A DNA stretch of 64,000 bases from Eutreptiella sp. 'Long Island Sound 2002' (Eukaryota; Protista; Euglenida): assembly GCA_964036045.1 (NCBI GenBank), contig OZ038379.1, positions 11,594,001-11,658,000 on the forward strand, given 5' to 3'. Each line of letters begins with the position of its first letter. Positions within the stretch are counted from its first letter, which is position 1. Positions 6,599 through 61,963 of this stretch are shown here, piece after piece. The notes under the pieces are model-generated. The model worked only from the letters and a program-made list of their open reading frames with translations, did not search any database and was not told the DNA's origin. Position numbers and translations under genes: made by a program.

Positions 6599-7915
6599 TG
6601 AACTAACAAGCGTAGCGTCATGACACAAGAACTTTTGCGGAGTAGCTGCGGAGTAGCGGCACGAGCAGACAATTGGGTTTACGGTGGGTGCAAAAGTATT
6701 GAAATGCCCTCCCTTTAGCATTTACAGCATGAGGGCAAACACCTACGTACTATGCAATTGAACTTTATGACACTTGCTACTAACATCGGTGCTTGCACTC
6801 CATCATTTTGCGTTGATTCCAAAGCACAATATGCGGGTGAGACACATGCAGCCCATCCATGTCCTCAAAGCTTCACGATGCGTGACACTCAGATGGTTTA
6901 TGTTCATCCTTGCTTCAAGAGACAAATACAAAACCTTAAGGCTCCCAATTAGGAGGTGTGTTCAAATTCACCCGGATAGTACATGGAAGGGTGAATTGTA
7001 CAACACAATGCAAAGCAAGCGAGCAGCGCTCAAAAGCTCAAAGACATGGAACTCGATATAGACAGCAAAATGCGGTGCCCCATGTGCTGCTGGTCTCAAC
7101 ACCAATAATCTGATGGGGGGCACGGTACAAAAGGGATTGAAAACAGGAAAATGGACGACCCTTGGACGTCTCAGTTTGAATGGCATCGCATCTATACCAT
7201 AAACAATTTGTCATTTGGGGCACGCCAACTCTTCGGCAATCGCGAAGTCTCCCGAGGCAGAAGGAATACCTTCTCGAGCCTTCCGTAGGATGGGATCAAA
7301 ATTTTACCCGCGCCCGCAAGGGTCGGCCAAAACCAAAACCAAACAAAACCAAAATTTGGTGCCACGCACAGGTTAGCAGCTGCTACAAGCGGAAAAGTAA
7401 GGATGCGGGCTTCAATGGGGGAGAGCTGATGAAAATGTTCTCAAATAAAATGCATCCGGGCTGCACCCGTGACAAGTGGTAAAAGAGCCTTCTCCGTTCT
7501 CAAATTGTGCAATGCCAGTAAGGGAAACCACTTCAAGTGATAGCGACATCCACACGATGCAAGCCAATCCACCCTCCACCATTGAGTGCAAAAAGTCCAA
7601 GATATCGCACTTTTGATGCCAATTCAAACGAAAGCGGATGGTTCGCCGCTGCTGTGCATAGCGCATGACGTCGTGCCTGCAAAATCGTTCAAAAACCCAG
7701 TTCAGCCGCAAACGGTGGTCACTAGCGAAAAAACATGAACACGACTCTCCAATACGGCCATGTGGTTGGTCGGCATGGCAAATCCCTGCTCTGGCACTCC
7801 CGGGAACCTAGTGACTTGGGAGGGAATGGGCCCAATTGTGGTGGTAGCTCACGTGTTCCCTTTGCAAGATTTTGTCCTTCATGCAAAACGGAAAATCTTT
7901 GAATCTTTGAATTGA
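6599..7915 (+). repeat. Left arm of long inverted repeat (~1.32 kb); contains the empty target site of the YR retrotransposon at ~6939-6940
   Basis: Reverse complement matches 9832-10733 joined to 15781-16120 almost perfectly, apart from a 74-bp indel (7761-7834) and a few SNPs. Confidence 0.95.
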
Positions 7916-9831
7916 GCCGCCAACCTAAGCTTGGTTGGGGTTTGGATACATGTGAAAAATTCCTAGATCATCGAACAAAGGTTCTGTACTCCGTTTCCCA
8001 TCCGGAGCCCCCGTTTGGCGTGAAGATTTCCCCGACAACTTTACCACAAGAGCACACACCCGAGGCATTCGTTTAGCGGAATTAGACGCAAGGTTTTGGT
8101 GGAAGCCCCGTTTTTGGTGCGGGAACATGCATCGAGTTTACTGAAGACGTGCCGCGAGGTACATGTTGCTTCACGGATGAACTTACCGTGACCGGCAGTG
8201 CTGAGGATGGCCTGAAGGGAGACGGGGCACGCAGTTTGCGCTCTTGTTGCACCGTGAGAGCGTGTGCTGGTGAGGGTTGTACTTGTTGGGGTACATAGGC
8301 TCACCACCACTAGCGGAACACCACTCCGCTGTTGGACAGAGTGTTTGCACTTCGTGCTGAAAGGGGTATTGCCGTGTGGATCCCCAAGGGAATGTGCATA
8401 TCCCAAGATGTTCCCTTCATAAAGTCCGTTCCGGACCCTGGCAACTCATTCCATTTGAAAAACTCCGTTCCAGCTAAACTCCATTCCATTCCATTTTGAA
8501 ACTCCTATCCCAAGATCTCGAATATTCTTGTCGTACTGCAGAATTTGTGTTAAATAAGGAATAATAATGGCCTCGGCCACCGCGGGCTTTTTTCCTTATC
8601 CTTATGTTCTAATAATGTGTTTTGTAGAGCCAGGATGTTTTCCTAATTTTCTAATGGAGCCCAACCTCAGGGATGTATTTTGATGTGTTCCTCATTCTTT
8701 GCTTCGCCGCCTTCGGCGGTATTGTTCCTTGAATGAATGCACATAAGCATGCATGGGCACAAAGCAGGCACAAAGCGTAAGAGGGAATTCTGAATGTGCT
8801 AAGCACGGCTAACCAAGGACGTGCAGCGAATCACGTCGCACATCTGCTCCCACCAAGTATGTCAGAGCCGACTTGTGCCGAGGCTGAGCCTTTTGGGCAG
8901 TGATCGAGTAAGGCAAGCCCAAGGCACCAAAACCAGAGCGGCAATTTCATGAACGCAAATTCGGGGTGCGAAGCACAAAAAGTTTTTTCCCACCTAGTGC
9001 TGTAGTGTGTCTCCAAGCACTTGTTGTGGAATCCGTCCCCTGGAGTTGAGGCACCGGCACTTTAATGAGGATAGTGATGAGGATGATGAGAATGACCCAG
9101 CTTGGGTTGATTTCATGGTAGAGATGGGGAGGAAGATGAGGAGGTTCAAGAGGAGGAGGACGATGACAATCAATTGCCGACCAATCTTGCTGATTGATAG
9201 CTTTAAAGCTACTACCACCCGCGGTGGACGAAGTACATGCATTCGACCCAAGTACTCATGAGTTTAGTGTCACATGTGGACAACGCCGATGTTTTGGCTG
9301 CTGTCGGATCTGTGGCAGATTGAAACTCAGGTATCACACCTGGGTGATCGATCAATCACTCTACTGTATATACAGGTCAACACAGTCAGGCACCGTTTTG
9401 GTGCCTTCGCGGTCCCCACAGTAGCCACAGAAACGGTCAAGCGGGTAACCGGGCAGATCACGGAGTGTCAAACCACCAGGTGCCAGTATGCAATTTGCAG
9501 CCTATAGAACGGCGCTGGGGCCGCCAGCGGCAAGCTGTGGCAAAGCGCGTACAAAAGTACGAACTAGAGTCTCTGTACACAGAGCGCAGACGCTACGTAA
9601 TTCGCGGTCGTCTCTGGACGATGTCTGTGTTGCGGCGTTCCTGACACATTTGTGGGATGCGGCTAAGTAAGGGATAAGTCCCTTACTTAGCCGCGTCATC
9701 TTTTCTCCTCAGTATCTGACAGGACTTTCAGAAATTGACACAATGTTGGAACCGGATTTTTTAGGATCACATTTCTGATTCTGATTTCTATCTATTGCAG
9801 AAATTTGGCAATTTCAGAATGCATTTTTTTA

Positions 9832-50555: not shown

Positions 50556-52044
50556 TCTGTTGAGGGCTGCAGGGAAGGGTAGCGCAGCGCTTAACACGGG
50601 GGAGCTGTGACAGTTCATTCCGCCGCAACTACTTCTGCCCGCACCCAGCGGTTTGCCAACCGAATGGTAGTCGCCAAACCTGGGCCCACAACCGCTTTTC
50701 CAACCATTGTTAACCGCCTCCGGCACCCACTTTTGAACTCCCCCTCCAGTCCCCCACTTCCAATCCCAACAATTATGACTGTCCTCCATTTGGGATGCCA
50801 GGGTATCTTCCGGCTGTTGTTGCTTTGCAAAATGGCGCTGCATCTGAACTGGTTGCCCCCCCCCCCCCCAAAAAGAGACAACACACAAATACAAAAAATA
50901 GTAGCAGACACAACCTCCCAACCCAACCCAACCCACCGACAAGCAGCACGATTAACCCGACCACAAATAAATTATCCGCCACAACAACTATCCGCCGACA
51001 TTTTCCAGACTCCTGTTCCGACCTTGGTGTGTGGGGCTTGATTTGTCTGGGGTATTGTGCTGTAGTTTTTGATCTTGCGTGTCGTTGCTTCTCCATGAGG
51101 GTCCTTTGGTGCTGTCATGCTTTGTGGATGGTCAGATTGGTTGAAGGGTCATTTGGGCCGTATTTGGCCGTACTGCCCTCTACGGTGCCCCGCTGGCGCA
51201 AATTCCTCTATGGTCCACCCAAGGTGAGCACAACCCCCTCTATGGTGCCCCTACAGTGAGCACATTCCCTCTATGGCCTCGTGTAGTGATCACTCCCCTC
51301 ATGGCCACTCAAGAGGGGGCAGACACTCTGAAATGGCGCCCCTTCAGTGAGCACAACCCCCTGCTATGGCCCCCCTGCAGTGAGGAGAAGCGCCTGTATG
51401 GCCCTCCAGGCGGCCCAACAGGACAACAAACAGGGCCCCTCGGTGCTAGCCATGAGGCAAGGGCGGGTGTAAGGCTCGGGGTGTACGTGGGTGGATTGGA
51501 GGGAGAGAAGGAGCGGGAGACCAGGAGGCAGCCCCGAGGGACGCCGCCCCCCTCCCTCCAAATGACGGTAGGCAGGTCTTCTTGTCCAAAGTAAGGAAAA
51601 ACTCTCCATCAAAATTGCATCTGCAATGTGCCCCAGAAACGCATGTCAACCATATACATGCCTCCAGCAACAAGCAGCCCCTTCGTCCATGAAAAATCCG
51701 ACGGCCAGTCCCTATCCTCTGTCCTGCACCTCATTGCGCCGTGCTCCTGTTCCCAAACAAAACTCCTGCCCCCCCACCCGCCATCCATCTGTCAATACCC
51801 GCTTTTGCAACCGCTCTTGAAACCGCCTTCATGCCCCTGCTGTGCCCTTGCAGTGCGACAACGTGACGATGGTGGCAGTTTCTGCCGGTTGGGTGTCGGG
51901 TGGTGGCGCGCTGGTGGCAGTGCCGGAGCAGCAGCTGGACGCCACTGGGACGTACACCGTGTGCTACAACTTCCGCGGCCTGGGTCTGCTGTCCATCACT
52001 GACCTGGTGGTGGTGAGCGGGGCGGTGGCCTTCCGGACCGTTGG
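50556..52044 (+). repeat. 1,489-bp host segment (intron 7 from +2 plus the first 191 nt of exon 8), copy 1
   Basis: Matches 60472-61963 except for 2 noticed SNPs (50648/60564, 51561/61480) and 3 extra C in a homopolymer. Confidence 0.97.
51854..52044 (+). pseudogene. Truncated copy of exon 8, fused to the retroelement
   Basis: Same sequence as 61773-61963; breaks at ttgg|atgtat; the host frame runs on to a stop at 52384. Confidence 0.88.
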
Positions 52045-53394
52045 ATGTATGCAGCGCCACTACTGCAACCCACGCAAATCACCGCCAGAACCGCCCAGGG
52101 GAACCCCATCTACGTCTATCACCCCACAGCAATCGCCCGCCTACCCATACCCAGCGACACCGACATCATCTTCTTCACTGACGCATCCGGCACCCAGCAA
52201 CGCACCCCCACGGTCGGTTGCGCCTCCGTGCGCATCACCCGGCACGCGGACGGCCTCCACGTGGAACACCACACCGGGGCCACCATCTTTGGGGCGTCCT
52301 CCCACGGCGAACTGCGCACCATGGCAGACGCCGTCACCGCCACACCGCCACCCACGACGATCCGGCCCCGCAACATCTGGGTAGTCGTGGACGCCACGGT
52401 TGACATCCACCTCACCAGGAGCCTTGCGGACCTGCCCCTCCACAAAGCACTCGAATCCGGCCTCACCACACAAGCGTTGGGACTATGGATGGCCTTCAAG
52501 GGCATGCACCCCCAGGACACCCTACACATCATCAAGCAGGAGTCACACCGCTACGCATACGGCAATGGACGCGCAGACACGCAGGCCAAACACCAGAACA
52601 CCAACCACACCCTAGGGCTCGAACGCGTGCGACTGGACACCCCACACCACAGCCACCTGCAGCACCTGCCCCCGATACCCCCGGCCACACAGCCCCCCCA
52701 ATGGATGCCCGAGGACACGCCGTACACGGATCGAGACAAGCAGTACCACTACCCCACACCCATCCAGCAACTGGCCACCACACTGGGCCACCCAGCGAAC
52801 ACCGAACTCCTCCGACGCCTCGAAGACTCCGTCCACACCCCCCTCTACTACTCCGCCCTGCGCCCGGATAGCCTCCCAGCACACCTACAAAAGCCCCGAC
52901 TCCAACTCGCCCTCGAACAACTTCCCCTCCTCACCCGATACCACCGATGGTATACGCGCCGCTCGATCCACGTCCCCGCAGGACACACCAAATGCATCTG
53001 CAGCCACGCGGAAGAAGAAACATGGGACCACTTCAAGGCGTGCCCCCTGTACAGAGGACTGGACACCCTCACAGACTGGAACCCAACCCACACCATCGCA
53101 CAGCACGCCGGATGGCTGACGCAGTCCCCGGCGACCCAGCAACTCACCACCGTCCTCAAGCAGACGGAGGTGCTCGAGGCAGTCCGCAGGGGACTCGTCC
53201 CCACTGCCGTCTACACCTTGCTACGCACCCACGCGGAGGACCCCCAGGCCACGGCGGCGCACATGCAGCGGACGGCCGTTGCCAAGACGGCGGAGCAGCT
53301 CACATACCGCACCCACAAATACCTGCAGCATGCGGCAACCCTGCCCCCAACAGACCAAGCCCACCTCCTCAAACTCCTGTTCTACCAACCATGA
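52045..53394 (+). CDS. C-terminal part of LINE ORF2: RNase H plus CCHC zinc finger
   Basis: FFTDAS, HGELRT, VVDAT, HIIKQESH..YGNGRADTQAK (RNase H D-E-D-D/H pattern); CICSHAEEETWDHFKAC. Confidence 0.88.
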   Translation: MYAAPLLQPTQITARTAQGNPIYVYHPTAIARLPIPSDTDIIFFTDASGTQQRTPTVGCASVRITRHADGLHVEHHTGATIFGASSHGELRTMADAVTATPPPTTIRPRNIWVVVDATVDIHLTRSLADLPLHKALESGLTTQALGLWMAFKGMHPQDTLHIIKQESHRYAYGNGRADTQAKHQNTNHTLGLERVRLDTPHHSHLQHLPPIPPATQPPQWMPEDTPYTDRDKQYHYPTPIQQLATTLGHPANTELLRRLEDSVHTPLYYSALRPDSLPAHLQKPRLQLALEQLPLLTRYHRWYTRRSIHVPAGHTKCICSHAEEETWDHFKACPLYRGLDTLTDWNPTHTIAQHAGWLTQSPATQQLTTVLKQTEVLEAVRRGLVPTAVYTLLRTHAEDPQATAAHMQRTAVAKTAEQLTYRTHKYLQHAATLPPTDQAHLLKLLFYQP

Positions 53395-53409
53395 GAACCT
53401 ACCCCGTGA

Positions 53410-55560
53410 CATACCAACACGGAACCCCCACCACGTCTACACACCATCCACCGAGCACAGCACTGGCACAGCACACACGGACGCCACAGGCACCGCACAC
53501 ACTCCCACCAGCATGCGCGCGCCACCAGCCCCCATCCCCCCACGCCGCCGTCCGTCCACAGGTACCACCAACCACCAGCCACCGCATGTCCCCTCTGCGT
53601 TAGCCGGCGGCTACCACAGACAGCCCTGCCCTGCAACCCAGACCACTGGGTCTGCCTGGGAGCCGCGCACCGCCTCACCCGCTGCCCCCACTGCGGGGAC
53701 CTCAACCCCCGCCACCACGAGCGGCCCGCGGCCCCAGCCGCACCCCACCCCGCCAGCCACCCCAGCTTCTTCGGGTTCCTCACCGACACCCTCCGGGACC
53801 ACCTGGGAGGGTACTACGTGGCGGACGCGGCGGACCACGCATGGACCATAGCCGTGGCCACGGGCAGCACACCCCTGCCCCCCCACAGCCCACCCCTACG
53901 CCACAGCGGAGGCGGCTTGAACGTGGCGGCCCGCCACATCCTCCTCGCCCTATACCTCCACCACCGAGACCTACACCTCCCAGGCCCACAACTCCCGGCC
54001 CCCCAAGCAGCAGCCCTGACGCCGGAAGCGTGGGCCGACACGGCACCAGAGGAGATAGCAGCCTACCTCCGAATCACTTGCCGCCGGTTCAAAAACGCCC
54101 TCGGCCGACGGAAGGGAACACCTTACCCCCTCAGCGCACTCCTCTACCCGGCACACCACCCCCACCCCGCACAACAGACGCCCCCGGAGGGCTGGGCGTC
54201 TTTTCGGGACGCCCACCTGGCCGCCCCCGACGAGGCCACCGCCACGCGGATGGGCCTCACGGACCAGGAAACCTACGTCAGAGGCCTCAAGACGAGCCTC
54301 CAAGAGGCACACCGCTGGCACGCCCGCTCCCCGTCGCCCCCACAGGGACAGGGGGGTTCACCCGCCCCCGACACCCACCAGGCCAAGAAGACCAAGACAG
54401 GTCAGGGGGCCCGCCAACGCGCCCACCAGCAGGGCGCGACGCCCCGACCAAGGCCCGGGTCCAGCCACACCGCACCACCCCACGCCCAGACCCCCGGGGC
54501 ACACCAACAACACCGCCACCGCCAGCGCCCACCACCACCACCGTACCGCAGCACCCAAACCCTGCAGCCCAGTCAGCCACCACCGCCCACACACGTCCAC
54601 ACCATGCCAGGACCACCATACGCGCAGAGCCAGGGGACATGGCACCACCAACACCACCACCACGCCCCCGTCCCTCCCAACCCCTACCCCCTAATGCCCC
54701 CAAGCTACAGCGACCCCCACCAGCTACATCCCCACCACGCCCCAGCACAACCAGGCCCCGCGAACCACCCACCCCACATAGCGCACATCACCGCACCACA
54801 CCATCACGTATTCCACCACCACCAGCCCCTGCCACCACACCCACCAACGCCGGGGTACCACACACAACCGGCACACCCTCCACACCACCACCACGCGGTC
54901 CAGCACCACCCGCCGCCCCCGCTACACGGGCCCACGACATACGAGCCACGGTACACCCCCATGGACCCGCGAGGAGCCGCGCACGCACACCAGCAACACC
55001 AGGGCCTAGTAGGAGCGCCCCACCACCACCAACAGCCCCCCCACCCACACCCCATACCAGCGAGCACCATCCACCAGCAGCCACCCATCACATACGGACC
55101 ACAGCCCCACCCGGGGGCTCATGCGGCCGCCTCCCACCCGCACCCCGGCACCACAACCAGTCAAGAACCGCAAGGGCCACACGGCGCACACACGCAACAC
55201 CCACACGACCCACAGGGACGCCCGGACCCCCAGCCGGCACAACACCCACCCCCGCCCCCCCCACCCCACCACCACCAGCAGCCCCCCCACCCACACCCCA
55301 TACCAGCGAGCACCATCCACCAGCAGCCACCCATTACATACGGACCACAGCCCCACCCGGACGCTCATGCGGCCGCCTCCCACCCACACCCCGGCACCAC
55401 AACCAGTCAAGAACCGCAAGGGCCGCACGGCGCACACACGCAACACCCACACGACCCACAGGGACGCCCAGACCCCCAACCAGCACAACACCCACCCCCG
55501 CCCCCCCCACCACCAACAGCGCCACCCCCACACCACCCCCCCCCCGCCCCCCCCCCCGAG
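53410..55560 (+). CDS. Extra ORF, N-terminal part: RING-like finger, helical domain, His/Pro/Gln-rich disordered region with an 82-aa tandem duplication
   Basis: Frame open 53410-56184; CPLC-x11-C-x3-H-x2-C-x2-A-x6-CPHC at 53587-53694; likely start is the ATG at 53391 overlapping the ORF2 stop (ATGA), which needs one frameshift. Confidence 0.6.
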
Positions 55561-56861
55561 ACCAGGCCACGGACACAACACGCGGCAGCCAGCACCAGCC
55601 AATCGACGTCGATACCCCCGCCGACACACGCCACCGCGAATCCCCCCTCCCGCGACCGCCACAAGAGACCCCATCACCGGACCCCACGCGCGACAACGAT
55701 GACCACCCCCCCCAACCCACACCACCCCCCCCATCACACCCCGCACCACCAGTCGCCGCACCGGCCGAACCCTACGCCCTACACAACCCCGCAGCGGTAC
55801 GGCAGCACCTCCGGGGACTCGGGGAACAGGACGTCGTGCTGTACCTCCGCACCTCCGGCACCAGCACCCCCATCCGGGCGGCCACCCTGGTCCAGGCGGC
55901 CACCCTGGGGGAAGGCGTCAGAGACTTCCTCTTCGACGCCTTCCTCCACGTCGCCCGACACGAGCGCCCCCCGCGCGCCACCCCAGACGGCGAGAGCCCG
56001 CCCCCCACGGGGAGCCGGATCTGGGTGCCCCCCATCGACTGGGGGCGACACCTGGTCGGACACCCCGTGCCGGGGCGGGTGGGCACCAAGGGCCGCACCC
56101 GCTACCACGAGCCCGACATGGCCCACCCCCCACCCGACGCCACCCCCGACAGCACCAAAGAGTGGGAGCGGGAAACATGGGTAGCCCGGATGGCCTCCCT
56201 GAGCAACTTCCGGCACCACGTCCCGGGGGACATCCCCACCCCCGACGAGCAGCAGCCAGCCCCCTCCACGTACATGACCCTCATGTACAATCTGCACTAC
56301 ACCCTCTCCACCACCACCTACGACGCACCCACAGACCACTGGGTGGTACACGGCACCGACTCCCTCCTCCCCGCCGACTACACCCCCCCCCCACACAACC
56401 CAGGCCCCGACACGTACGCCAGGGGGGACGACCCGGACGACCCCCACATCTGGGGCACGTGGGAACCCAAATCCCTGGACACGCTGCTCTCCATCCGCAG
56501 CGGCTACCAGGGCCTTGGTAGGGCGATGTATTGCCTCGCCAAGTGGACCCAACGGACCTGGGGGATCCCCACGGACCGATGGGTGTGGGTGGTCACGCTG
56601 CGCCCCCAGCAGAGGGAAGCCCCCCCAAACCGCAGGGGACCCACCCCCCCACGCCCCACCACCCTACAACTATGCCCGTACATGGTGGCAGCCCGCCTCA
56701 TGACGCTGCTGTGGACGGGCCCCCACACCCCCACCCAAAACTACCCCCACCTCACAGAGGAGGACATGCCCGGCATCCAGCGATGCTTCTTCCAGACCCT
56801 CGACTACCTCCAGCAAACACACCCGCACGTCCTGGAGCAGATATGGCCACCCCCCGGGTAA
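55560..56861 (+). CDS. Extra ORF, C-terminal part: Ulp1/SENP-like (peptidase C48, clan CE) cysteine protease
   Basis: Motif order IRAATLVQ..GEGVRDFLFDAFL, RIWVPPIDW, YNLHYTL (His 56295), VHGTDSLL (Asp 56358), PQQ, LQLCPYMV (Cys 56673); joined to the upstream frame across poly-C runs near 55500-55560. Confidence 0.55.
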   Translation, partial: DQATDTTRGSQHQPIDVDTPADTRHRESPLPRPPQETPSPDPTRDNDDHPPQPTPPPPSHPAPPVAAPAEPYALHNPAAVRQHLRGLGEQDVVLYLRTSGTSTPIRAATLVQAATLGEGVRDFLFDAFLHVARHERPPRATPDGESPPPTGSRIWVPPIDWGRHLVGHPVPGRVGTKGRTRYHEPDMAHPPPDATPDSTKEWERETWVARMASLSNFRHHVPGDIPTPDEQQPAPSTYMTLMYNLHYTLSTTTYDAPTDHWVVHGTDSLLPADYTPPPHNPGPDTYARGDDPDDPHIWGTWEPKSLDTLLSIRSGYQGLGRAMYCLAKWTQRTWGIPTDRWVWVVTLRPQQREAPPNRRGPTPPRPTTLQLCPYMVAARLMTLLWTGPHTPTQNYPHLTEEDMPGIQRCFFQTLDYLQQTHPHVLEQIWPPPG

Positions 56862-58304
56862 CCCACGTGCCCGCGCAGCCGAGACAACGCCGCCACGCCA
56901 GCACCAGCACGCACGGATCACCAGGGAAAACGCGCGCACACGCCCGATGCCCGAACCTGCACCCTCGTTCTCGCTACTTACAGGACCCAGCATCATACGC
57001 CCGCCCCCGAGGCCCAGGACCCTCCGCCGTCTCCCACAGCCCTCTCCTCCGCCTCCGACTCCACAACCTCCACCACCACGACCACCTCATCCACCACCAC
57101 CACCACGTCCTCATCCAGCACTCCACCCCCCAGGCCGCGGGGGACACCTCCCAAACGGGCCTCCAAACCCGCCCCCACCGCGAGCAGCCCCGCCGCCGCC
57201 AAGGCCCACGCCCCGACGAAGCCCACACCCACGACCCAGCCGACGCCCAAGACCGCCGCCAAACGGCCACCCAAACCCAAGGGTCAACCCGCAGCCAAGC
57301 CCAAACCCAAGCCCAAACCTGGCGCCACGACAGCAGCGCGAGCCCGGCCCCCCGAGGACGTCCTCTACGACATCCGGCCCCAGCCGTCCCAGGCCCGAAG
57401 GCAGCAGCGCCCAGCGCGGCGCCCCCCCACCGTCACCGACGCCACCGCCACCACCTTCATGGCGGAGCGCGCCGCGGCCGAAGCGCGACGCACCTCGTCC
57501 CGCCACCTCTCAAAGCCCGCACCCCAGGCCCACGGACCGCTCCCGACCAAGCCAGAACAACGCCAGGGTCCACTAGCAGCGTCCCCGCCCCCCTACCGGC
57601 CCTCGATGACAGCCCACATGCAACGCATGCCCCACTACCGCCGCCGCCGCGAATCCCCGCCCAACCCCGAGGCGGAGACCGTACGCGCACACCCGCGGGT
57701 CCACATCCGCGTGCACCCCCACTCCCCACGCACCCCCACGGAACAGGACTACGAGGAATCCCCCAGGCCCGCCACCGCCGCCGGTCCCCACGACCACGTC
57801 ACACCCACCCACGCCCACTCCTCCGCCCAAGACCGCAGGCCCGCCCAGGAACAGTGGTGGCAGCGCTGGACCCACACGCAGCTCTGGGAGCTGCGGAAGT
57901 GGGGCCGGGGAGAGCCCTCCCTCGAGGGCCTGGTCCATCGGCCCCGCAAGGGGTCGGTGGAGAACTGCCGCCTCCGGCCGGCGGGGGGGTGGATGCCGCA
58001 GGCCGCATGGGAAGCCATGCTGGCCGATGCGCTCCACCCCCTGGGAGTCCACCCCCGCAACCTCCCCGCGCCCCAGGACCACCCGTATGTCCTCAGGCGC
58101 CTGCGGGAGACCCTCCAGGAAACGCAGCGAGACGGCATCCGCCTGTGGGACATCACCCAAAGCCCAGCTCCGCACGCACACACCCCCTCACCACCCCACA
58201 AGCGTCGGCGCACCGACACCGGCGACACCCACAGCACCCCAGGAGCCCTGCGCGCCACACAACACGACGCGCCTGACCCCCCGGCCAGCGGCGCCGCCAT
58301 CTAA
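56862..58304 (+). CDS. Extra ORF: Ser/Thr/Pro/Lys-rich region plus Trp-rich C-terminal domain of unknown function
   Basis: 480 sense codons directly after the protease TAA in the same frame; first ATG at 57459; WWQRWTHTQLWELRKWG...WEAMLADAL. Confidence 0.55.
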   Translation, partial: PTCPRSRDNAATPAPARTDHQGKRAHTPDARTCTLVLATYRTQHHTPAPEAQDPPPSPTALSSASDSTTSTTTTTSSTTTTTSSSSTPPPRPRGTPPKRASKPAPTASSPAAAKAHAPTKPTPTTQPTPKTAAKRPPKPKGQPAAKPKPKPKPGATTAARARPPEDVLYDIRPQPSQARRQQRPARRPPTVTDATATTFMAERAAAEARRTSSRHLSKPAPQAHGPLPTKPEQRQGPLAASPPPYRPSMTAHMQRMPHYRRRRESPPNPEAETVRAHPRVHIRVHPHSPRTPTEQDYEESPRPATAAGPHDHVTPTHAHSSAQDRRPAQEQWWQRWTHTQLWELRKWGRGEPSLEGLVHRPRKGSVENCRLRPAGGWMPQAAWEAMLADALHPLGVHPRNLPAPQDHPYVLRRLRETLQETQRDGIRLWDITQSPAPHAHTPSPPHKRRRTDTGDTHSTPGALRATQHDAPDPPASGAAI

Positions 58305-58929
58305 CCCCGTTACCCAGCAAACCACCACCACGGGGCGCCACGCCAGGCCCCGCCCAGAAGTCACCAAACGAACCGGACGCCGAAGGAAGCCAACACACAC
58401 GACAACGAGCACCACTACGCCCAAAGACGCCGAACCCAGGCCCGCTACCGTGGGCTCCTCTCCACCCTCAGCACGACACACACGTCGCTGGCGTCACTCC
58501 TCCGCCGTGCCCCCTCCCACGCCACCGCCCCGCCCCCCCCCCCTCCCGCCGCACGTCCCCACGCCGCCCAGCACCCAGCCCCACACACTGCGCCACAGCA
58601 TCGCCCTAGTCCGGCTCCTCCACCATCGCGCCACTTGGCACCTCACAGTAGACCGCCGTCCTGTGGTCCCGCTCCCCCCGGCACCGCTCCCGGGGCCGCA
58701 CCCGGCCCACGTCGTGTTCGCCCCCACGTCGCGGGCCGCGGACATCCTCCCGCTCCTCGCCGCCACCCCTCCCGGGCATCGCATACTGCTTGCCGCCAAC
58801 CCCTCGGTCCTCAGTGAGGTCCTCATCGGGCACGCCGACGCCCTGCACGTGCGCCCGCTGCTGCCCAACCTGCACGCTGCGTACGCCCCCGGCACGCCCG
58901 TCGACCCCTCCGTGTGGGACTCCCAGTGA
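58305..58929 (+). CDS. Extra ORF with probable frameshift in poly-C: small alpha/beta-like domain of unknown function
   Basis: RYRGLLSTLSTTHTSLASLLRR in the frame after the TAA, then HSIALVRLLH...HVVFAP...RILLAAN...VWDSQ in another frame. Confidence 0.45.
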
Positions 58930-59030
58930 GGCCACCGGCCACCGGCCGGCCCGCACGCACCACCCCGCACTCGCCTCGGGCGCACGACCCCGTGGACGCC
59001 GCTACCCACACGCCCGGCCCCGCGCAACCG

Positions 59031-59404
59031 CCTAACCGAGCCAGAACCCAAGCACAAATCAAACCCGAGCCACACCCCAAAACCGCTAACCCTTGACTCC
59101 TAACCAAGCCCGCCAAGGGAACACCGAAACCACAGCCCACACCCACAGCCCACACAGCCGCCTAACCAGCCAGCTCCAGAAGCAAAGAGACACCTCACCA
59201 AACCCACCCTGACCCAAGCCTAACCGAGCCGAAGCCCCAACACAAATCAAACCCGAGCCACACCCCGAAACCGTCAACCCTTGACTCCAAACCAGGCCCG
59301 CTGAGGGAAATACGTAGACACAGCCCACAGCCACAGCCCACACAGCCGCCTAACCAGCCAGCACCAGAAGCAAAGAGACACCTAACCAAACCCACCCTGA
59401 CCCA
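59031..59404 (+). repeat. 188-bp tandem repeat, 2 copies, in the retroelement 3' region
   Basis: Units start at 59031 and 59219 (cctaaccgagcc). Confidence 0.92.
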
Positions 59405-59545
59405 TACCCGTGTACATCAGGACACGCGAGCCGCACCCCTGGGGCGCGACCGCCGCCACAGCACCGACGACACACGCCAGAGGACACAACGCTATTGCAC
59501 CGCCGCACCAACTGCCCGTGCCTGTGCCTGCAGTGTACGCGCCCC

Positions 59546-59663
59546 TGTTTTTCTCTTTTTTGTTTTTTCTTTTTTTTTCCCAAAAAAAAAAAAAACAAGT
59601 AAAAAAAAAAAAAAGTAAAAAAAAAAAAAACAAAAAAAAAAAAACAAAAAAAAAAACGAAAAT
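59546..59663 (+). repeat. T-rich tract immediately followed by an interrupted A-rich tract
   Basis: T-rich ~59546-59578, A-rich ~59582-59663. Confidence 0.95.
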
Positions 59664-59721
59664 TAGGGGGGGAGGAAGAGGGACACAACCACCCATGGCA
59701 CACGCGCACCGCACACAGCAC

Positions 59722-59890
59722 GCACACCGGTGAACAGGAGCCCAGTGGCCCAGGACACCGCACATGCAACACAACACACCGAGCGAGCACACCGGTGAAC
59801 AGGAGCCAGCTGGCCCAGGACACCGCAGACGCACCACAGCAAACCGCGCGGGCACACCGGTGAACAGGAGCCCAGCGGCCCAGGACACTG
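59722..59890 (+). repeat. Three copies of a ~37-bp motif with palindromic core CACCGGTG at exact 65-bp spacing
   Basis: gcacaccggtgaacaggagcc....ggcccaggacac at 59722, 59787 and 59852. Confidence 0.93.
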
Positions 59891-60471
59891 CACACACGTA
59901 GGGCGGCCGAGGGACAGGAAAGAACCAATACCCCATGGGTCGGACGCACTGGGGCGACCCAGCCGACCCACCGGGCCAGTGGCAGGAGCGGTACTCCAAG
60001 GCCACTGGTCCGAGCCCGGCCAGGCTGCATCGGGGACCATGGCAAACGTCACCCGGAGCCATGGAAGCAACCGGTGACAGGCGAGCCGGTACACAGTCCA
60101 GGAGGGGGTCACCTGCCAAGCAGAGTGGCCCCGCAACTCAAGCCACAAGGGTGAGGCGGACGTACCGTAGACAAGCGGGAGCAATACCCCTTGTGGTGAG
60201 AGATACTCCACACGGCTGGGCAGCCCCCCAGAGCTGCCGCCCAAAGGAGGGGGCATGTGGCCCTACCCATGGACACATGTGGGGACACCCTCCCACCTGG
60301 GACACATGGACCGGGTGGCCGCGACAATGCCTTCCCAAGCACATGCGGGAGCGGCTCAAGAGGCACCTGACATAGGGCAGTGGGAGGGACAGGACGTCCC
60401 CTTGGTAAGACCTTCTTCCTGCAATGTCAAAGGAGGCATCCCGAGCTCCCGAAGATACCTACCTACCTACC

Positions 60472-61963
60472 TCTGTTGAGGGCTGCAGGGAAGGGTAGCG
60501 CAGCGCTTAACACGGGGGAGCTGTGACAGTTCATTCCGCCGCAACTACTTCTGCCCGCACCCAACGGTTTGCCAACCGAATGGTAGTCGCCAAACCTGGG
60601 CCCACAACCGCTTTTCCAACCATTGTTAACCGCCTCCGGCACCCACTTTTGAACTCCCCCTCCAGTCCCCCACTTCCAATCCCAACAATTATGACTGTCC
60701 TCCATTTGGGATGCCAGGGTATCTTCCGGCTGTTGTTGCTTTGCAAAATGGCGCTGCATCTGAACTGGTTGCCCCCCCCCCCCCCCCCAAAAAGAGACAA
60801 CACACAAATACAAAAAATAGTAGCAGACACAACCTCCCAACCCAACCCAACCCACCGACAAGCAGCACGATTAACCCGACCACAAATAAATTATCCGCCA
60901 CAACAACTATCCGCCGACATTTTCCAGACTCCTGTTCCGACCTTGGTGTGTGGGGCTTGATTTGTCTGGGGTATTGTGCTGTAGTTTTTGATCTTGCGTG
61001 TCGTTGCTTCTCCATGAGGGTCCTTTGGTGCTGTCATGCTTTGTGGATGGTCAGATTGGTTGAAGGGTCATTTGGGCCGTATTTGGCCGTACTGCCCTCT
61101 ACGGTGCCCCGCTGGCGCAAATTCCTCTATGGTCCACCCAAGGTGAGCACAACCCCCTCTATGGTGCCCCTACAGTGAGCACATTCCCTCTATGGCCTCG
61201 TGTAGTGATCACTCCCCTCATGGCCACTCAAGAGGGGGCAGACACTCTGAAATGGCGCCCCTTCAGTGAGCACAACCCCCTGCTATGGCCCCCCTGCAGT
61301 GAGGAGAAGCGCCTGTATGGCCCTCCAGGCGGCCCAACAGGACAACAAACAGGGCCCCTCGGTGCTAGCCATGAGGCAAGGGCGGGTGTAAGGCTCGGGG
61401 TGTACGTGGGTGGATTGGAGGGAGAGAAGGAGCGGGAGACCAGGAGGCAGCCCCGAGGGACGCCGCCCCCCTCCCTCCAGATGACGGTAGGCAGGTCTTC
61501 TTGTCCAAAGTAAGGAAAAACTCTCCATCAAAATTGCATCTGCAATGTGCCCCAGAAACGCATGTCAACCATATACATGCCTCCAGCAACAAGCAGCCCC
61601 TTCGTCCATGAAAAATCCGACGGCCAGTCCCTATCCTCTGTCCTGCACCTCATTGCGCCGTGCTCCTGTTCCCAAACAAAACTCCTGCCCCCCCACCCGC
61701 CATCCATCTGTCAATACCCGCTTTTGCAACCGCTCTTGAAACCGCCTTCATGCCCCTGCTGTGCCCTTGCAGTGCGACAACGTGACGATGGTGGCAGTTT
61801 CTGCCGGTTGGGTGTCGGGTGGTGGCGCGCTGGTGGCAGTGCCGGAGCAGCAGCTGGACGCCACTGGGACGTACACCGTGTGCTACAACTTCCGCGGCCT
61901 GGGTCTGCTGTCCATCACTGACCTGGTGGTGGTGAGCGGGGCGGTGGCCTTCCGGACCGTTGG
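60472..61963 (+). repeat. 1,492-bp host segment, copy 2
   Basis: See copy 1; begins directly after the (TACC)4 tail. Confidence 0.97.

Follow-up and report, generated by a model that had tools for sequence, protein, structure and literature searches.

Further coding sequence behind ORF2 of an abundant euglenid LINE, including a candidate clan CE protease domain

LINEs (long interspersed nuclear elements) are usually taken to need only two open reading frames (ORFs), ORF1 and ORF2. In the I group (I, Ingi/L1Tc, Tad1, R1, LOA), ORF2 combines an apurinic endonuclease (APE), a reverse transcriptase (RT) and an RNase H with a Cys/His knuckle at the C-terminus; the kinetoplastids, relatives of the euglenids, have Ingi and L1Tc as their LINEs. 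To our knowledge I-group elements end soon after ORF2, and none has been described with 5.5 kb of extra ORFs. The Dualen/RandI elements are reportedly LINEs of green algae, an account ascribed to Kojima and Fujiwara in 2005. An Ulp1-like protease is present N-terminally, in the same ORF as the RT, in NeSL and Utopia (PMC4640811), while Dualen has a cysteine protease with a Josephin-related annotation at its C-terminus and very long target duplications (median 900 bp for Dualen-4b_cRei of Chlamydomonas; PMC9977147). Ulp1-like (Peptidase_C48) domains also occur in DNA transposons, as plant MULE/CACTA captures and in Ginger2/TDD (PMC2836005). The repeats of the Euglena gracilis genome are largely unclassified (PMC11252322), and the searchable literature yielded no account of LINEs with such ORFs in Euglena. 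Here we analyse a stretch of 64,000 nucleotides from Eutreptiella sp. 'Long Island Sound 2002' (assembly GCA_964036045.1, contig OZ038379.1, forward-strand positions 11,594,001 to 11,658,000; called the window below), which contains a copy of an APE-type LINE whose coding sequence runs on well past its RNase H-like ORF and includes a protease-like domain.

The insertion, its flanks and the part of ORF2 that it retains are as follows (positions are those of the window).

50556-52044, no strand assigned: upstream copy of a 1,489-bp host duplication (intron plus exon), abutting the truncated 5' end and ~99.8% identical to 60472-61963
52045-60471, plus strand: 5'-truncated LINE copy, an 8.4-kb insertion between the host duplications
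60472-61963, no strand assigned: downstream copy of the 1,489-bp host duplication, counterpart of 50556-52044
52045-53394, plus strand: ORF2 tail, frame 0, 449 codons, ending at TGA 53392, with an RNase H-like motif and a CCHC knuckle

Because 50556-52044 recurs almost identically at 60472-61963, we read 52045-60471 as an insertion flanked by a target duplication; composition also changes sharply at 52045, from where the plus strand is rich in C and A and poor in T. A 1.2-kb probe matched ~2,200 candidate copies in the 2.28-Gb genome, and the 40 copies scored were 99-100% identical. Six copies on other chromosomes align to 52048-60472 at ~98% and share the (ACCT)n 3' end, after which their flanks are unrelated. 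Four of the six reach further upstream and encode APE and RT, with which the ORF2 tail is continuous in sibling copies, and the remaining two are truncated inside the 3' module, at the equivalents of 53608 and 54102. The 5' ends lie at five different element positions, the variable 5' truncation that is a hallmark of LINEs. RT was recognised by PF00078 in one sibling copy (L026, E=1.8e-15), the window copy being truncated downstream of this domain, and APE by PF03372, N-terminal to RT, in L026 and L027 (E ~1e-6, above its cut-off); the best PDB matches of the sibling-copy APE-RT proteins were human L1 ORF2p and R2. Since two copies start at the same element position beside unrelated flanks, full length should be near 13.9 kb. 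The region is therefore the 3' two-thirds of a 5'-truncated copy of a very abundant, recently active APE-type LINE, and an earlier note on this DNA, made from the letters alone, was right to call it a non-LTR element.

That note had also asked whether the RNase H-like ORF and the ORFs behind it belong together. They stand in the same order in every copy examined, and subfamilies 78-94% identical (from an ENA assembly) keep the series APE, RT, RNase H-like plus CCHC, 3' module. If the two parts were instead independent nested insertions, the only sign of it would be the composition change at 52045, which is itself simply the insertion boundary. The same junctions recur in every copy and subfamily, 5' truncation can begin within the module, there is one common 3' end, and a sister family (family B, below) likewise has ORF2 followed by a protease-like ORF. 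Nesting was rejected on the order shared by other-chromosome copies and diverged subfamilies, and we give it next to no probability.

Behind ORF2 the element carries these features, all on the plus strand.

53392-53409, plus strand: two in-frame TGA codons (53392, 53407) between ORF2 and ORF3, identical in the window and four sibling copies
53410-55535, plus strand: ORF3 N-terminal part, frame 0, with a RING-like cluster, an unassigned region to ~54300 and a His/Pro/Gln-rich linker
55536-55557, plus strand: poly-C tract C10-G-C11, the frame switch between the two halves of ORF3
55560-56861, plus strand: ORF3 C-terminal part, frame 2, with stop TAA 56859 and the protease-like domain at 55767-56858
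56862-58304, plus strand: ORF4 of 480 codons in frame 2, ending at TAA 58302; rich in Ser/Thr and in Lys/Pro, and C-terminally a region of ~100 residues
58027-58929, plus strand: ORF5 of 300 codons in frame 0, which starts with ATG while ORF4 is still open; frame-0 periodicity over 58305-58926
58930-60471, plus strand: 3' untranslated region (3' UTR), lacking codon periodicity, with an (ACCT)n tail at 60457-60471
59030-59404 and 59707-59901, plus strand: tandem repeats within the 3' UTR, of 188 bp x2 and 65 bp x3, respectively

ORF length is weak evidence of coding here, because the sense strand is poor in T: 6.5-12% over 52045-60471, 3' UTR included, and 0.01-0.04 at third codon positions. 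One frame is open over 53407-56182 and another over 53601-56859, which makes two open at once for 2.6 kb, and dinucleotide shuffles yield open stretches of ~470-515 codons (maximum 1047). The downstream ORFs could on these grounds be non-functional, either chance open frames of a T-poor strand or decaying captured sequence, and it would fit that neither the protease-like part nor the linker has short-term codon bias and that no conserved AUG lies ahead of ORF3. Several results make this very improbable. None of 500 shuffles reached the 1085 codons observed, and 25 stop codons were observed against ~50 expected. The codon signature of ORF2 (third-position C ~0.54-0.55 with the same scarcity of T, second position rich in A and T) recurs over 53410-54309 (frame 0), 55560-58300 (frame 2) and 58305-58926 (frame 0 again); it is absent from 58930-60471, so that periodicity ends at 58929. 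Within the linker we saw a first-position C period consistent with CAN and CCN codons. Counting only substitutions common to at least two diverged copies, changes by codon position were 10/17/28 in the N-terminal part of ORF3 (p=0.011) and 28/42/52 in ORF4 (p=0.027), with a weaker third-position excess in the protease-like part (34/29/45). The stops between the ORFs are conserved, and the homology to family B described next is frame-specific with saturated third positions. Judged from these patterns, the coding sequence up to 58929 is genuine and moves with the element; the ~5.5 kb of further same-strand coding sequence that had been proposed behind ORF2 is thus borne out by periodicity and by the comparison of families.

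In family B the APE-RT and RNase H-CCHC regions are ~46% identical to those of the window's family (family A). Its protease-like ORF stands alone, with 386 codons and an ATG of its own, and starts shortly after the ORF2 stop; neither finger nor linker could be detected in this family. When the protease-like domains of the two families were aligned, the proposed frame gave z=22 against residue shuffles and the other frames 1.0 and 1.4. Nucleotide identity by codon position was 0.44/0.57/0.40, where composition alone predicts 0.30/0.28/0.41. Since positions 1 and 2 are above and position 3 at the random level, synonymous sites are saturated and replacement sites have been kept, the mark of long-term purifying selection on the protein. 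By the same comparison this domain is the ancient part of the module, predating the split of A and B, while the RING-like finger and the linker, undetected in family B, are later additions in family A. Finger and protease-like domain are thus not conserved as a pair, contrary to the two-part module that the earlier note had drawn. The C-terminal part of ORF4, whose stop is kept in subfamilies, gave a weak match to family B (E ~0.005-0.009) and may be common to both families.

Closer copies give a different picture of the protease-like domain, one that is a caveat to the evidence above. Among family A copies its changes are spread evenly over codon positions (50/54/51), against 63/51/106 in the RNase H part (third-position excess of the ORF2 tail against its relatives, p=1e-5); for family B the corresponding counts are 58/49/55 and 37/33/69. 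Either constraint on this domain is much weaker than on ORF2, or selection on it is partly diversifying. Conservation of the 3' ORFs, which the earlier note had proposed to check, is visible among diverged copies as a third-position excess in the N-terminal part of ORF3 and in ORF4, and only weakly so in the protease-like part. In some large subfamilies of family B the stretch with the putative Cys (PQQSLTCGY) is out of frame with the His-Asp part, and in others it is in frame (L034 10950-11100; P0273 and P0286 compared with P0298 and P0281). An unrelated LTR-type RT-RNase H ORF (PF17917, PF17919) lies near one family B copy, at L034 19062-19523.

The reading of this domain as an Ulp1/C48 protease had been based on a His-Asp-Gln-Cys series in the right order. 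These residues, His56295, Asp56358, Gln56610 and Cys56673, are H177, D198, Q282 and C303 of a 364-residue domain, and the series is indeed present and conserved in both families: H177 in 46/49, D198 in 39/48 and C303 in 46/49 sequences of family A, and in 68/69, 60/64 and 21/22 sequences of family B, with Q282 likewise conserved in each. Only two columns of a 126-sequence alignment are nearly invariant, and H177 is one of them. Predicted secondary structure has three strands in a row, of which the second begins with the His and the third is directly followed by the Asp; then come helices, a further strand and a helix that starts with the Cys. This is the order of strands and helices in Ulp1. 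Family B has PQQ-x3-CG before the Cys helix. A language-model neighbour search (ESM Atlas) found Peptidase_C48 in 24 of the 30 nearest clusters with a score of 0.93, the nearest being plant C48-bearing hypothetical proteins.

A good deal weighs against this assignment. The neighbour search gave only noise with family B and did not repeat the C48 result, and the C48 result itself had 162 features in common, fewer than the 170 that true family members usually have. Neither PF02902 nor any other Pfam family matched at E up to 10, whether the domain, pieces of it or 56 relatives were used, and a PDB sequence profile search with the domain was empty as well. AlphaFold models were poor both with the 126-sequence alignment (predicted local distance difference test, pLDDT, 56; predicted template modelling score, pTM, 0.28) and with the single sequence (pLDDT 37). 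The low-confidence model found no clan CE match by Foldseek (PDB, BFVD), VIA-align wide or the ESM Atlas shape search, these fold searches returning only generic helical or chance matches, and aligning the domain profile to E. coli ElaD, a member of Pfam C48, with hhalign gave a probability of 0.09. The Gln-to-Cys spacing is non-canonical, and the resemblance to the C-terminal motif of SENP is putative. Of the checks by which a clan CE triad was to be recognised, the profile searches thus gave no Pfam, PDB or hhalign match, and the structure models, of low confidence and with no Foldseek match, have an order of secondary-structure elements that is compatible with clan CE.

How much these negatives mean can be gauged from ORF2. 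Its RNase H-like domain carries a D-E-D-H-D motif of RNase H type (52180, 52309, 52390, 52546, 52576), with the CCHC knuckle behind it at 52993-53043, yet it has no Pfam and no PDB match, and its profile aligns with E. coli RnhA by hhalign at a probability of only 0.3, although in register with D10/E48/D70. Because this domain fails in Pfam, PDB and hhalign too, the formal tests have low power on these proteins, which diverge too far and have too biased a composition for such tests to tell much. Protein libraries contain 137 representative clusters that match the 364-residue domain, some at only 28% identity, and the most distant of these clusters are those of family B; none of the homologues, all of them ENA records (five were traced to one assembly), has a name or a Pfam tag, so that they provided no bridge to known families.

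A real LINE accessory protein outside clan CE, for example one acting in RNA or chromatin binding or in ribonucleoprotein (RNP) assembly, would agree with every formal family or fold test being negative, with the language-model match that family B did not repeat and with the relaxed short-term constraint. This alternative leaves unexplained that H, D and C stand in clan CE order in two families ~30% identical, that the order of secondary structure fits and that 24 of the 30 nearest clusters are C48, and it draws little weight from negatives of tests that also miss the RNase H domain. We regard it as unlikely, though it holds a substantial minority share of our expectation. The Ulp1/C48 call is thus upheld by the conserved H, D and C, by the strand and helix order and by one neighbour search, and opposed by every formal test. 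On balance we put membership of the domain in clan CE (Ulp1/SENP-like) at slightly better than an even chance, and by a similarly small degree we favour the fuller reading, that of a LINE with real extra ORFs whose ORF3 domain works as a cysteine protease of clan CE through His56295, Asp56358 and Cys56673.

Set beside the described systems, the element resembles NeSL and Utopia in being a LINE with a putative clan CE/Ulp1-like protease beside its RT, and oomycete Utopia also has an RNase H. It differs from them in being of the APE type where they have a restriction-like endonuclease, and in placing the domain 3' of the RNase H-CCHC region, in a separate ORF behind stops and, in family A, fused to a RING-like finger. 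The NeSL domains, moreover, align with cellular Ulp1, whereas the present domain reaches no threshold of any hidden Markov model. The C48-bearing DNA transposons share cargo of C48 type, but they are not LINEs, and Pfam recognises their C48 domains above threshold.

The Dualen/RandI group comes closest in overall plan, with APE, RT, RNase H, further domains and a terminal cysteine protease, and with exceptionally long target duplications. If the present element belonged to it, the finger and the unassigned region would represent a restriction-like endonuclease that has degenerated, and the 3' domain would be the Dualen protease. The gross order does match (APE, RT, RNase H, zinc finger plus X, cysteine protease; PMC9977147), as do target duplications of 1,489 bp here and of at least 637 and at least 792 bp in two siblings. 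However, the restriction-like endonuclease and the Josephin-related protease of these chlorophyte elements were both undetected in the euglenid one: by eye we saw no PD-(D/E)xK motif in 53700-54300 or elsewhere in ORF3, where Pfam also gave no endonuclease match (no dedicated profile was used), and there was no Josephin or other Pfam match. In Josephin the residues run Cys...His...Asn, opposite to the conserved His...Asp...Cys seen here, and family B lacks the finger region altogether. Membership in this group is thus improbable. The earlier note's proposal of an undescribed architecture with a 3' accessory module stands as regards the extra linked ORFs, while for a 3' cysteine protease as such Dualen is a precedent (PMC9977147).

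The N-terminal part of ORF3 opens with a Cys/His cluster at 53587-53694, C-x2-C-x11-C-x3-H-x2-C-x4-H-x4-C-x2-C, whose ligands are kept in copies 65-91% identical. Its best PDB match is the RING of SIAH1 (E=0.033, below threshold), with 7/8 ligands in register, followed by IAP/XIAP RINGs; in Pfam, zf-C3HC4_3 and Sina_RING matched at E ~0.009 and 16 bits, against cut-offs of 27 and 29. Compared with the SIAH/IAP-type C3HC4 RINGs, which are its best matches in both databases, the cluster lacks ligand 6, a His standing two residues later, and scores 16-18 bits. The RING spacing that had been pointed out is present where it was placed and in the SIAH1 register, but the profile matches stay below threshold; a RING-like finger is a fair assignment, not a proven one. 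The His/Pro/Gln-rich region reported behind it was found as described, at ~54300-55545, and includes a 246-bp tandem duplication at 55018-55509.

In the window the finger (frame 0) and the protease-like part (frame 2) are separated by the poly-C tract, which is of a different length, shorter by 1, 2 or 3 nt, in each of six other copies. Only where the tract is 2 nt shorter is frame 0 joined to frame 2, giving a single ORF3 of 1,149 codons that contains both domains. These length differences could be real slippage or homopolymer errors of assembly.

For the start of ORF3 the earlier note had singled out an ATG overlapping the ORF2 stop. The ATGA overlap is there (53391-53394), but its ATG lies in frame 2, not in the frame 0 of the finger, and is poorly placed as a start in another respect as well, since it lacks conservation: a 78%-identical relative keeps the first TGA and reads GGTGA in its place. 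For the same reasons re-initiation at ATGA was rejected as the start of ORF3. In the window copy the frame opened by this ATG ends at TAG 53601. That TAG is created by A53602, where most genomic copies, and nearly all of the contig depth in four sequencing runs, have C; the window's subfamily departs from most genomic copies at a few sites, namely 53602, 53606, 57574 and 55700.

Intact copies hold the C-terminal part of ORF1, ORF2, ORF3 and ORF4 in one frame with stops between them, in the series ORF1, UGA-C, ORF2, UGA-G, four codons, UGA-C, ORF3, UAA-C, ORF4, UAA-C (read from L015 and L021 joined, 6785-6787, and from 53392, 53407, 56859 and 58302 of the window). Wherever a subfamily covers the separating stops it has kept them, and the chance probability of a one-frame layout is ~1/27. 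Together this suggests graded read-through. As the ORFs lie in one frame behind conserved stops, the downstream proteins would be made in small amounts; those of ORF3 to ORF5 might arise by stop read-through, by re-initiation or from sub-messages trans-spliced to a spliced leader. A search for sequencing runs on record as RNA found none, and contigs of the four runs showed no consistent splice joints. The 24-base euglenid spliced-leader sequence occurs 5,458 times in the genome, and its reversed control 0 times, in support of a euglenid host. In the listed part of contig C1 its copies (29492, 113346, 144516 and others) are scattered irregularly, without obvious tandem arrays, which would fit many retroposed trans-spliced messages.

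If the protease-like domain is active, it could either free proteins of the host or of the element from SUMO or ubiquitin-like modifiers, or cut the element's own products. One can go further and picture euglenid APE-type LINEs that have long carried a SENP/Ulp1-like deSUMOylase, fused in one family to a RING-like finger and made by read-through or from trans-spliced sub-messages, which shields the element or its RNP from SUMO-dependent silencing. We consider this extended scenario doubtful, and the anti-silencing role of the 3' module within it is speculation; if true, it would represent a new LINE architecture and a new form of counter-defence. Quite apart from it, a LINE family with thousands of young copies keeps several extra proteins, one of them retained while the RTs of two LINE families diverged to 46% identity. 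Were that protein a protease for SUMO or ubiquitin-like modifiers, the retrotransposon would encode a tool that acts on the modification and silencing systems of its host, and the one-frame layout with stops bears in any case on how multi-ORF LINEs are translated.

Flanking duplications of 0.6-1.5 kb were found in 3/7 copies. That of the window copy (1,489 bp) starts within 3 nt of the GT start of an intron. In L013 joined to L019, the recognisable 5' end is preceded, at a distance of 477 bp, by a repeat of at least 637 bp of the downstream flank, and in L014 joined to L020 at least 792 bp recurs 1,072 bp upstream of that end. Very long flanking duplications thus seem to be a trait of this LINE family, and they bear on how such elements may reshape genes. 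The joined L014 and L020 copy also has a 1,668-bp segment of its RT region (7739-9406) inverted relative to three other copies. Finally, the copy in L017 joined to L023 is embedded in a satellite array, with units at ~320-bp offsets over at least 3.5 kb.

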